Positions 5,801 through 59,650 of a DNA stretch of 64,000 nt are shown here, one piece after another. Position 1 is the stretch's first letter, and each line of letters starts with the position of its first letter. The DNA is taken from NCBI GenBank assembly GCA_964035545.1, contig OZ037771.1:124001-188000 (forward strand), read 5' to 3'. The position numbers and the translations under genes are program-made. The notes under the pieces were generated by a model. The model made no database searches. It worked only from the letters and a program-made list of their open reading frames with translations, and was not told the origin of the DNA. Origin of the DNA: Bugula neritina (lineage: Eukaryota > Animalia > Bryozoa).

Positions 5801-7450
5801 GTAATACTACACTCTATATAATACTATACTCTATATAATACTATACTCTATATAGTACTATACTCTGTATAATACTATACTCTATATAATACTATACTCT
5901 ATATAATACTATACTCTATATAATACTATACTCTGTATAATACTATACTCTATGTAATATGTTCTTTAGAAAGTCGACACGGTGATGTCACCTTCTCACA
6001 TCTCTCCAAGTTGAGTTATTTGGAGTGTTGTATAAAAGAGTCGATGAGACTTCTTCCTGCCGTCCAGTCTGTTGCTAGGCAACTGTCGGACGACACTCAG
6101 CTTGGTAACTACGGAGTATATATATATATATATATATATATATATATATATATGTTGTATAGTAGGGTATATATGATATGTAGTAGAGTATATATGATAT
6201 ATAGTAGGGTATATATGATGTATAATAGAGTATATGTGATGTATAATAGAGTATATATGATATATAGTAGGGTATATATGATGTATAGTAGAGTATATAT
6301 GATGTATAGTAGAGTATATATGATATGTAGTAGAGTATATATGATATATAGTAGGGTATATATGATATGTAGTAGAGTATATATGATATATAGTAGGGTA
6401 TATATGATATGTAGTAGAGTATATATGATATATAGTAGGGTATATATGATATGTAGTAGAGTATATATGATATATAGTAGGGTATATATGATGTATAGTA
6501 GAGTATATATGATGTATAGTAGAGTACATATGATGTATAGTAGAGTATATATGATATGTAGTAGAGTATATATGATGTATAGTAGGGTATATATGATATG
6601 TAGTAGAGTATATATGATGTATAGTAGGGTATATATGATATGTAGTAGAGTATATATGATATATAGTAGGGTATATATGATATGTAGTAGAGTATATATG
6701 ATATATAGTAGGGTATATATGATGTATAGTAGAGTATATATGATGTATAGTAGAGTACATATGATGTATAGTAGAGTATATATGATGTATAATAGAGTAT
6801 ATGTGATGTATAGTAGAGTATATATGATGTATAGTAGAGTACATATTACCATTACAGGTGGATATACAGTTCCCAAAGGCACCACCGTCTTACTGGTTAT
6901 AATGGCCCTCCACAGAGATCCCAAAGTTTTCCCCAACCCTCTCCAGTTTCAACCTGAAAGGTTCTCTGCTGAACAGTGCAGCAGACGGCATCCATTTTCT
7001 TATGTGCCTTTCAGTGCCGGACCTAGAAACTGTATAGGTAACACTTATGTGCTATTCAGTACTGGACCTAGGAACTGTATAGGTAACACTTATGTGCTAT
7101 TCAGTACTGGACCTAGGAACTGTATAGGTAACACTTATGTGCTATTCAGTACTGGACCTAGGAACTGTATAGGTAACACTTATGTGCTATTCAGTACTGG
7201 ACCTAGGAACTGTATAGGTAACACTTGTTCAGTGTACCAATAGTCCAGGTCAGTTTCCTATTAGATTTGCACTTGTATAGACCCTGTTTCAGGTCAGAGG
7301 TTTGCCATGATGGAGGTCAAGGTTATACTGGCTAAACTGTTGATGAATTTCAACATTGAGTCGACGCAGACAATGGAGGAACTTGGCATCAGAGCCGCCC
7401 TTGTTCTCCACCCCTCCAACGGAGTTAAAGTCAGGTTGAGCAGCAGATAG
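2849..7450 (+). CDS. Cytochrome P450, CYP4 clan (CYP4V/CYP4C-like), 9 exons: 2849-3044, 3238-3442, 3836-4032, 4340-4536, 4691-4849, 5029-5131, 5970-6104, 6858-7037, 7293-7450
   Basis: N-terminal TM anchor, [28 protein letters not shown]-helix [14 protein letters not shown] (CYP4 consensus EGHDTT), ExxR (KESMR), PERF, heme motif [10 protein letters not shown]|QRFA. All junctions GT-AG and phase-compatible. Confidence 0.95.
3459..3800 (+). repeat. Intronic minisatellite, 21-bp unit (CYP intron 2)
   Basis: gtgacagtaagcagtgttctt x~16. Confidence 0.95.
5150..5958 (+). repeat. Intronic minisatellite, 17-bp unit (CYP intron 6)
   Basis: actatactctatataat tandem array. Confidence 0.95.
6117..6845 (+). 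repeat. (TA)n plus intronic minisatellite, 21-bp unit (CYP intron 7)
   Basis: tatatgatgtatagtagagta tandem array. Confidence 0.95.
7000..7227 (+). repeat. Exon/donor junction minisatellite, 45 bp x5 (CYP exon 8/intron 8)
   Basis: AG|GTAACAC donors at 7038, 7083, 7128, 7173, 7218. Confidence 0.95.
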
Positions 7451-7792
7451 ACAACTACTGCCTTTACGTCTAGTTTACTGTGTCATATAACAGTGTCATA
7501 TATATTAGTGCTTTTATATTATATTCAATCGGTATACTGAATTCAAAATATTATGTGATTCATGCTTGATTGTAATGCAATCGTCTGACCAAATATTTAA
7601 AATAAGTTTTTATTGAAATATAAAATACATTATAAAAAAGAACAAAAAAATAAAAGTAGTCAACTGTTAAACCAACACATGCCGAGGGGTGAGTGTAAAT
7701 GAAGCAAGCTATTTAAAATGAAAGTATTATAGTGCTCAGTCTATTTACTGACCCATTTAGATGGTTACAGAGTCAACTGGGGTTATCTCCCC

Positions 7793-57200: not shown

Positions 57201-59650
57201 TGATATGAAGGTAGTGATATGAAGGTAGTGATATGAAGGTAGTGGTAGCGATATGAACTTACTATCAAACAATTTGATGATATGCCGGTGCTGAAATCTC
57301 CTGAGATACTGTATTTCTTTCAAATCATGTGTCGTTTCTAAACAGGGACGATAACTCCGGAGTTCTCGTTTACACACATGATCACCTGAGTTGGTGAGCT
57401 TTATGATCATATACCTACAGATAGATAGTATGATGTACTATATTACTAGCATATGATCATATACCTACAGATAGTATGATGTACTATATTACTAGCATAT
57501 GATCATATACCTACAGATAGTATGATGTACTATATTACTAGCATATGATCATATACCTACAGATAGTATGATGTACTATATTACTAGCATATAATCATAT
57601 ACCTACAGATAGATAGTATGATGTACTATATTGTTAGCATATAATCATATACCTACAGATAGATAGTATGATGTACTATATTGTTAGCATATGATCATAT
57701 ACCTACAGATAGATAGTATGATGTACTATATTGTTAGCATATAATCATATACCTACAGATAGATAGTATGATGTACTATATTGTTAGCATATAATCATAT
57801 ACCTACAGATAGATAGTATGATGTACTATATTACTAGCATATGATCATATACCTACAGACAGATAGTATGGTGTACTATATTACTAGCATATAATCATAT
57901 ACATAAATACCTGTGATTATGTTCCTCATAGCCAACGAAAATGTTTGAATAGCAGCCTTTATATAAATGTTCTAGACAGAATATTCCATGAGATGTAATG
58001 TCTCTAATAGATGTATCTAGACAGTTCTTTCCTGTAGACATCAGTGTCTTCTTACAGAGAGGTAAAGGGGGATATTGGTGTTCTATGCTGTGACCTGGGT
58101 ACAAGTTGTATACTGAGATACTAGTTATATACTGAGATACTAGTTATATACTGAGATACTAGTTATATACTGAGATACTGGTTATATACTGAGATACTAG
58201 TTATATACTGAGATACTAGTTATATATACTGAGATACTAGTTATATACTGAAATACTAGTTATATACTGATATACTAGTTATATACTGAGATACTAGTTA
58301 TATACTGAGATACTAGTTATATACTGAGATACTAGTTATATACTGAGATACTAGCTATATACTGAGATACTAGTTATATACTGAGATACTAGTTATATAC
58401 TGAGATACTAGTTATATACTGAGATACTAGTTATATATACTGAGATACTAGTTATATACTGAGATACTAGTTATATATACTGAGATACTAGTTATATACT
58501 GAAATACTAGTTATATACTGATATACTAGTTATATACTGAGATACTAGTTATATACTGAGATACTAGTTATATACTGAGATACTAGTTATATACTGAAAT
58601 ACTAGTTATATACTGAAATACTAGTTATATACTGATATACTAGTTATATACTGATATACTAGTTATATACTGAGATACTAGTTATATACTGAGATACTAG
58701 TTATATACTGAGATACTAGTTATATACTGATATACAAGTTACTTACTTAGAGGGCATTTAACTTTGCAGACAATGCTGTTCAGTTTAGCATCTGATCCAT
58801 CTGATATTATAGCCATACATTCATGAGGTTTACGATAACTAGGAGAGGGTCTCAATCCGTCTCCAACAGCTGCACAATTATCAGCATTTCTAACAAATCC
58901 AGTAGCACCGCTGTAGATTAAAGAGTTCATGTAAACTGAAAGTGAAATGAATATGGAAGGCACTAAAATGTTTAATATAATATAATACCATGTAGTCACA
59001 GCAACTAATAGACTCACCATTAATAACTAATGACTGCTGGTAACTCACTACTAATAACTAATGACTACTGGTAACTCACCGAGTGTCTGGAAAAAGCCGC
59101 CCGTGAGGGAGAGAGAGCACCTTTGAGAAGGCACTCACAGACTTTGGTGTGACCACAGAGTCCGCCATGCGGTCATATCTGTGAAAGGAAGTGTGGGCGT
59201 GTCCCAACTGACTCTGTGCACCAACGATGCCTGGCAGCGACACAGACGAGCCGCGAGCATGATTCAGCCCATCCCTGGTGTCCCCAGTGTCGGTGTCCCT
59301 GCATATATACGTGATGTGTGTGTGTATACGTGATGTGTGTGTGTGTATATACATGATATATGTGTATATACATGATATGTGTCTATACATGATATATATG
59401 TGTATATACATGATATGTGTGTATACATGATATATATGTAAACTACAATACTAATATATTATATAGATGTGTGCGAGTGTGTAGAAGAGTAAAAGTTTAC
59501 CACTGACATGGGTTCAAGGGTGTCATGAGCCGACTGGTTGTAGTTTCTCTCAGAAAGTGAGATCCCACTAACAGACTTGGAGATCTTATTTGGTGGAGAG
59601 GAGGAAGATTGCTCAGTTAGCATCAACAAGGGGGCGTGACTACTGAACAT
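54228..59650 (-). CDS. CAMK-group (TSSK-like) kinase-fold protein, probably a pseudokinase; ~9 exons (59650-~59467, 59300-59080, 58911-58748, 58093-57911, 57414-57263, 56266-56109, 55780-55652, 55568-55328, 54372-54228)
   Basis: Subdomain order IIK, EIQYLRRFQHRHIIKLFD, ILLEFCCNG, KYFRQMFSAVNYIH, VKLID, GFQAPE, ADVWSLGACLYSMVTG, RDLLSGML..PDCR. Confidence 0.82.
54440..58737. repeat. Private intronic arrays in the pseudokinase gene (54440-55325; 55790-56085; 14-bp 56320-57257; 46-50-bp 57403-57900; 20-bp 58088-58737)
   Basis: Directly visible tandem units. Confidence 0.93.

Follow-up and report, generated by a model that had tools for sequence, protein, structure and literature searches.

Minisatellites Straddling Splice Junctions near a Chromosome End of the Bryozoan Bugula neritina

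Introduction

How do genes keep their message when their introns are built of tandem copies of the exon-intron boundary, and what puts such copies there? Thirteen minisatellites in six genes of a 64-kb stretch of the Bugula neritina genome straddle a splice junction in this way, each setting several decoy sites beside the real one. The stretch (hereafter the window: contig OZ037771.1 of assembly GCA_964035545.1, positions 124,001 to 188,000, numbered here from its first letter) lies 0.12–0.19 Mb into a chromosome-scale contig of 15.8 Mb, part of a 216-Mb assembly, and tandem repeats make up 42% of it. A preliminary description, made from the sequence alone, proposed that a recurrent duplication process seeds arrays at junctions and that the arrays are tolerated through exon definition or through nonsense-mediated mRNA decay (NMD). 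We think it probable that these arrays are a by-product of private minisatellites in short chromosome-end introns, combined with splice-site choice that is anchored on the exon.

The original description of such repeats, in amphioxus, is said by later papers to be that of Canestro in 2002. Tandem repeats that extend across an exon-intron boundary were named mirages in the amphioxus Adh3 gene and were later reported from globin (BflGb6/BflGb9), troponin C, and PGBD5 genes; they occur at 5′ and 3′ boundaries and give no aberrant mRNA (PMC3087553; PMC3902484). Human exon/intron-border variable number tandem repeats (VNTRs) of the donor type occur in intervening sequence (IVS) 7 of F7 (37 bp), in CBS IVS13, and in LMNB2, IFI6 (6-16), and PDGF, and in F7 splicing takes the most upstream donor, even where the pseudo-sites would preserve the frame (PMC1557585). 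The phenomenon, for which the preliminary description knew of no account at such density, had already been named in amphioxus and dissected in human F7.

Results

Exons placed by hand and checked by script gave models of seven genes with 73 GT-AG introns, each model being one open frame (median internal exon, 160 nt); the joined models served frame checks only, and database searches were run with single exons. Fifty of the 73 introns hold 52 minisatellites between them, which amount to 75% of intron bases. Thirteen of these arrays have at least one exon base inside the repeat unit (the range is 2–39), and in twelve of them the unit includes at least five. Nine are of the donor type (7038, 9568, 10807, 31650, 36989, 38211, 38933, 40492, and 46999) and four of the acceptor type (7935, 18808, 24707, and 57415). 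Their units stand head to tail, with periods of 21–70 bp, 4–16 copies, and 91–100% matches. Each straddling array carries 3–15 decoys. A weight matrix built from splice sites of the window scores them equal to the real site in nearly all true cases, so weakness of sequence does not silence them. Each intron has units of its own, only three AT-rich pairs having 20 nt in common, and on that ground we rejected a shared mobile repeat family.

The arrays differ in what use of their decoys would do to the protein. The 45-bp donor mirage at 6999–7226 (plus strand; real donor 7038), in the last intron of a CYP4-like cytochrome P450 (CYP) gene, includes 39 exon bases and has four decoys of identical score, in frame and stop-free. 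Three in-frame, stop-free decoys of ambiguous usage follow the first donor, 9568, in the 45-bp mirage at 9396–9592 (minus strand; 24 exon bases), and the 21-bp donor mirage at 36790–36997 (minus; real donor 36989) makes up nearly all of a 210-nt intron (36780–36989). At these three arrays a decoy, if used, would keep the frame and add no stop; at the other ten of the 13 it would bring stops or frameshifts. Among the acceptor mirages, that of 53 bp at 7929–8516 (minus; 6 exon bases; real acceptor 7935), also in a last intron, has 11 decoys, each leading to an early stop. Stops likewise follow the three decoys of the 38-bp mirage at 18657–18814 (plus; 6 exon bases; real acceptor 18808) and the nine of the 46–50-bp mirage at 57402–57902 (minus; 13 exon bases; real acceptor 57415), and the six decoys of the 30-bp mirage at 24520–24734 (plus; real acceptor 24707) are in frame but meet a stop at the end of each unit. 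The remaining donor arrays comprise a 56-bp array of ten copies with two exon bases (10238–10809, minus; real donor 10807), a 45–47-bp mirage with about 39 exon bases and seven decoys, where read-through meets an immediate stop (31611–32005, plus; real donor 31650), and four minus-strand mirages: 32 bp with 15 decoys (37709–38217; real donor 38211), 70 bp with 37 exon bases and three decoys (38680–38970; real donor 38933), 22 bp with 5 exon bases and eight decoys (40309–40497; real donor 40492), and 25 bp with eight decoys (46781–47004; real donor 46999).

Twelve of the 14 junction arrays listed in the preliminary description are confirmed as straddling arrays and coincide with GT or AG sites of open-frame models in six genes. 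An edge case is the array at 47126 (47124–47357, minus), in the 5′ untranslated region (UTR) intron of an EIF1AD-like gene: it is an acceptor array with the last AG, at 47126, and two exon bases inside the unit, but its period is 28 bp, not 31, and frame cannot test a 5′UTR. We rejected the one at 58094 as a mirage; this 19-bp intronic array (58100–58741, minus) ends 5 nt away from the acceptor at 58095, whose context is not reproduced in it, and holds only five weaker AG sites above 1.5 bits. As for the 3–30 near-identical decoys claimed for each array, their scores are indeed near-identical, but their number does not exceed 15. Beyond that list stand the donor array at 10807 and two arrays that end at an acceptor with no exon bases and weaker decoys, one of 12/24 bp (41631–41886, minus; acceptor 41631) and one of 22 bp (51463–51623, plus; acceptor 51623). 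A further addition, a 31-bp repeat of two copies at 59012–59080 (minus), duplicates the donor at 59079 (decoys at 59048 and 59017); it falls below the array threshold and is possibly an early mirage. The length of the intron at 36780–36989 is divisible by three and its sequence has no stop; 21 nt come after its last unit, and retention of this intron or decoy use would add 7-amino-acid repeats right before the IBR domain.

RNA contigs matched to 6847–10115, which bear on four arrays, indicate which of the competing sites is used. In two RNA runs, each from a different study, contigs connect 7037 with 7293, which places the splice at the first donor, 7038, and connect 8600 with 7934, which places it at the last acceptor, 7935. 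The RNA animals are 5–10% diverged from the assembly, and one run (X7) has their alleles and both arrays. In three runs, loose contig ends at 10103 match the exon whose end is at 10808, a joint that corresponds to the first donor, 10807. RNA depth is 1–2 over the first decoy bin of the CYP array against 120–200 on exons. In three RNA-tested introns the productive site is thus the one next to the exon, as the preliminary description had it. The 9568 intron looks leaky, with signs of second-donor use and of retention: loose contig ends fall at 9569 (run X12; first donor) and at 9524 (run X9; second donor), and both runs hold an unspliced contig over 9350–9471. Since the 9568 decoys are in frame and stop-free and lie inside a low-complexity linker, leakage there may be tolerated.

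Junction-dependent NMD is inactive in last introns, and both 7038 and 7935 lie in last introns. Products of the 7038 decoys would be in frame and stop-free as well, so NMD cannot explain the choice made there, and we reject it for this array as a general guard. The last decoy at 7038 would leave a normal 75-nt intron, yet the first donor wins. In the CYP array the intronic copies are identical to one another; the exon copy departs from them at 5 of 39 bases and is the sole keeper of the conserved heme-motif residues, a sign of long-term use. Because the first donor wins at 7038 despite decoys that escape NMD, and because the exon copy alone is conserved, splice-site selection is exon-anchored. 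Use of the first donor matches the 5′-to-3′ first-site rule of human F7 (PMC1557585); the last-acceptor rule would require recognition from the exon side.

The frequency with which arrays meet junctions can be set against chance. Our null places a seed the size of one unit with equal probability anywhere on an intron or its edges, and straddlers are expected accordingly among 52 arrays. Short introns mean that a large share of random seeds includes a junction, and the 13 straddlers show no excess over the 12–25 expected for introns of 200–94 nt. The expectation is 24.5 with collapsed intron lengths (median 94 nt; P[≤13] = 0.0003), 16.5–16.8 with the lengths of the window's array-free introns, and 12.4 at 200 nt; a possible deficit of straddlers is perhaps due to selection. 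Units that straddle exceed the rest in length (median 45 versus 22 bp; P = 0.0008), as the geometric model predicts, and wholly intronic arrays lie no nearer splice sites than uniform placement would put them (P = 0.18). Microhomology at array ends, seen as an overhang of 3–7 nt in 13 of 39 arrays against 7.4 expected, is no more than suggestive, since array edges are over-extended by the repeat finder.

Density follows chromosome position. Minisatellite cover is 0.39 at 0.3 Mb, 0.31 at 0.6 Mb, 0.20 at 1.0 Mb, 0.10 at 1.5 Mb, and 0.04 at 2–3 Mb; it is 0–0.12 in the interior and 0.13–0.15 at 13–14 Mb, and the first sample (20–30 kb) and the 15.0-Mb sample are low. Arrays number 9.5 per 10 kb at 0.3–1.5 Mb versus 1.1 at 2–12 Mb (about ninefold; P = 0.004), the window having 9.4. 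The high density stressed in the preliminary description is real, though it tracks the chromosome end, and its driver is likely a recombination-rich end zone. The nonrepeat part of array-bearing introns has a median of 53 nt, against 214–370 nt for paralogous or orthologous array-free introns, a difference that may reflect compaction or overwriting near the chromosome end. Elsewhere on this chromosome, the 10 kb at 10000001–10010000 are entirely one tandem satellite, a centromere candidate.

Discussion

We suspect that short local duplications (10–70 bp) arise near the chromosome end at more or less random gene positions and are amplified and homogenized by slippage or unequal exchange. Copies lying wholly in exons would mostly be purged, and intronic copies would be free; the unit would often span a junction because so little of the intron is nonrepeat. 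A straddling array would then survive only if the spliceosome keeps the copy on the intact exon, that is, the first donor or the last acceptor. This choice would be made when splice sites are recognized from the exon side, through exon definition or exon-side enhancers, with donors also taken 5′ to 3′ on a first-come basis as in human F7. It would not be made by decay of wrong products, and NMD may clear up what leaks through where a decoy introduces a stop. The decoys themselves would have no function. Of the two routes to tolerance suggested earlier, exon definition accords with exon-anchored choice; NMD as a general cause is not supported, given three arrays with in-frame, stop-free products and two RNA-tested cases in last introns.

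Decoys might nonetheless be used often, their products being hidden by NMD or by protein quality control. The stops or frameshifts that decoys bring in ten arrays would allow this, steady-state contigs cannot reveal degraded forms, and 9568 looks leaky precisely where its product is stop-free. We consider such hidden use improbable: the 7038 products escape NMD, yet RNA depth collapses over the first decoy bin, 7935 is likewise in a last intron, and stop-free pseudo-sites are silent in human F7 too (PMC1557585). Equally improbable, in our judgment, is that a process tied to splicing or transcription, such as R-loops, spliceosome stalling, or RNA-templated repair, starts duplications at exon-intron boundaries. 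Many array edges do fall 10 nt or less from a splice site, selection against some straddlers could mask an excess, and 13 straddlers are more than would be expected if ancestral introns were about 360 nt long. With collapsed or window-typical lengths there is a deficit instead, the gaps at array edges fit uniform placement, 39 of the 52 arrays include no junction, the units are exon-plus-intron (genomic) sequence rather than spliced junctions, and array density goes with position on the chromosome. Junction-targeted seeding, the recurrent process of the preliminary description, gains no support from either null.

That the arrays are an assembly artefact or over-expanded repeats is scarcely credible. 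Contigs of a sister population, the closest relatives (92–97% exon identity), carry the same arrays, the 5′UTR array at 47126 included. Their short-read contigs do hold fewer copies, as an artefact here might predict: about three units at 46999, where the EIF1AD intron is 99 nt against 270 nt in the window and other relatives have no array, about six at 38211, and one fewer at 38933. RNF31 introns measure 195 versus 265 nt and 197 versus 517 nt, and array-free introns keep their length between populations (96 versus 96 and 248 versus 215 nt). Repeats collapse in short-read assemblies, however, which may account for part of the shortfall. Arrays contain variant units and recur in independent samples, and word depth in DNA run X1 is 370–730 on arrays against about 110 on unique sequence, that is, 4–7 times the unique level, so that the suspicion of artefact raised earlier can be set aside. 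Only slightly more credible is that the introns are new, born by tandem duplication of coding AG|GT sequence (the Rogers model), as already proposed for mirages (PMC3087553). Several introns consist almost wholly of array (the last unit at 36989 is followed by only 21 nt, and 8 nt precede the first at 57415), and the unit at 46999 looks like the beginning of the exon that follows. In the sister population the unit shows no such likeness, and EIF1AD intron 1 is found array-free at the same codon, 214–349 nt long, in four relatives, on which ground we rejected its birth from the 46999 array. The last CYP intron is common to six array-free paralogues in the chromosome interior, where it measures about 355–370 nt. 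By this comparison, which covers EIF1AD and CYP, the two introns are, to judge from their relatives, older than their arrays.

Several points weigh against a by-product of chromosome-end minisatellites and exon-anchored choice. The RNA evidence consists of assembled contigs from diverged animals, concerns four arrays, and drops rare isoforms, and one of those arrays, 9568, is the one where a second donor and intron retention are hinted at. The gradient comes from 19 samples taken along a single chromosome. The null rests on intron length at the time of seeding, and its verdict depends on that length: at 360 nt the expectation is 7.3, and 13 becomes a mild excess (P = 0.025).

The arrays belong to the known mirage class, now in a new phylum, the Bryozoa; we found no paper on bryozoan minisatellites or mirages in the literature. 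A head-to-tail minisatellite unit, which in this class measures about 10–160 bp, spans the boundary, the splice site is duplicated, and RNA places splicing at the authentic site at 7038, 7935, and 10807, with 9568 ambiguous. They resemble amphioxus mirages, whose Adh3 units are 10–72 bp, in the boundary-spanning unit, the presence of 5′ and 3′ types, concerted evolution in which the boundary copies diverge, apparent variation in copy number, and the fact that no aberrant mRNA is seen. They differ in phylum, in number (13 in 64 kb, set against a count of all introns), and in their chromosome-end gradient. Amphioxus Adh3 also shows somatic instability. In human VNTRs, too, the donor lies within the first unit, pseudo-sites identical to it come after, and the most upstream donor is the one used; some of those genes show leakage to one or two sites further on, and 9568 may do likewise. 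The human examples, however, are rare single donor-type cases in long-intron genes, whereas here the acceptor type is common too and introns are short. Minisatellites are enriched near the ends of human chromosomes and in nematode arms. Those subtelomeric arrays are also private to their loci and increase toward the chromosome end; the arrays described here are far denser inside genes and have AT-rich units. The tandem copies holding splice signals recall intron gain by the Rogers model (discussed in PMC3087553), but the two introns compared predate their arrays, and intron gain gets no support from them.

About one intron in six in the window carries identical competing splice sites, of donor and acceptor types, apparently with natural copy-number alleles. 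Such a zone allows first-come scanning, exon definition, and NMD rescue to be tested at scale from RNA reads alone. It is also a warning to annotators, in that ab initio models and short-read assemblies err near these chromosome ends. The arrays give no evidence for a new splicing-linked mutational machine. More tentatively, and with doubts that outweigh our confidence, we suggest that the unique part of chromosome-end introns has been shrunk or overwritten by private minisatellites, creating hundreds to thousands of natural, copy-number-polymorphic experiments with duplicated splice sites. On this suggestion, where as many as 12 acceptors are identical, the last would win through exon-anchored 3′ choice, and in-frame arrays, 9568 among them, may yield isoforms graded in protein length. 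If true, the acceptor arrays would argue against simple first-AG scanning or intron definition in a short-intron invertebrate.

Other Features of the Window

All seven genes are open-frame models. The CYP4-like gene (2879–7452, plus; nine exons), host of the 7038 array, has a Pfam p450 match on exon 8. Convergent with it is a gene with a weak C-terminal Myb-like match (7790–12246, minus; its 5′ end lies outside the model), supported by four RNA joints. The match, telomere-repeat-factor-like, has a Pfam E value of 0.006, below the cut-off, and the identity of the gene is uncertain; a PDB search with the Myb-like exon returned spurious TPR matches only. The 3′ ends of the two genes overlap (7291–7934), and RNA contigs fuse both there. 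An exon of the Myb-tail gene contains a coding minisatellite (8723–8934, minus) of 33 bp, or 11 amino acids, repeated 6.4 times, in frame and covered by RNA. The ABCC5-like transporter gene (17752–32895, plus), with a Pfam ABC_tran match, has 27 modeled exons encoding 1373 amino acids, further 5′ exons lying outside the model.

The RNF31/HOIP-like RBR ligase gene (34085–43573, minus) has 16 introns and a Pfam IBR match, its family name being read from the translation; one of its exons, used as a query in metagenomes, found no related locus. A linker exon of this gene contains a degenerate coding repeat of 27 bp, or nine amino acids (40906–41108, minus), and one of its introns a near-perfect hairpin (39606–39824), with 102-nt arms that are 99% complementary, a 15-nt loop, and two flanking TA runs; it resembles a miniature inverted-repeat transposable element or a fold-back. 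The EIF1AD-like gene, whose relatives were compared above, occupies 45635–47122 (minus), and that for eIF4E2 (4EHP) 50074–53410 (plus); a search with the latter gave no named bryozoan protein among its matches. The TSSK-like Ser/Thr kinase gene (54215–59650, minus) takes its name from kinase motifs in the translation, a Pfam search of one exon having given no match. Further open reading frames, named from translation only, are a 162-amino-acid unknown (13907–14392, minus), an XRCC2-like frame in two exons (60378–61176, minus), and a fucosyltransferase-like last exon (450–1266, plus).

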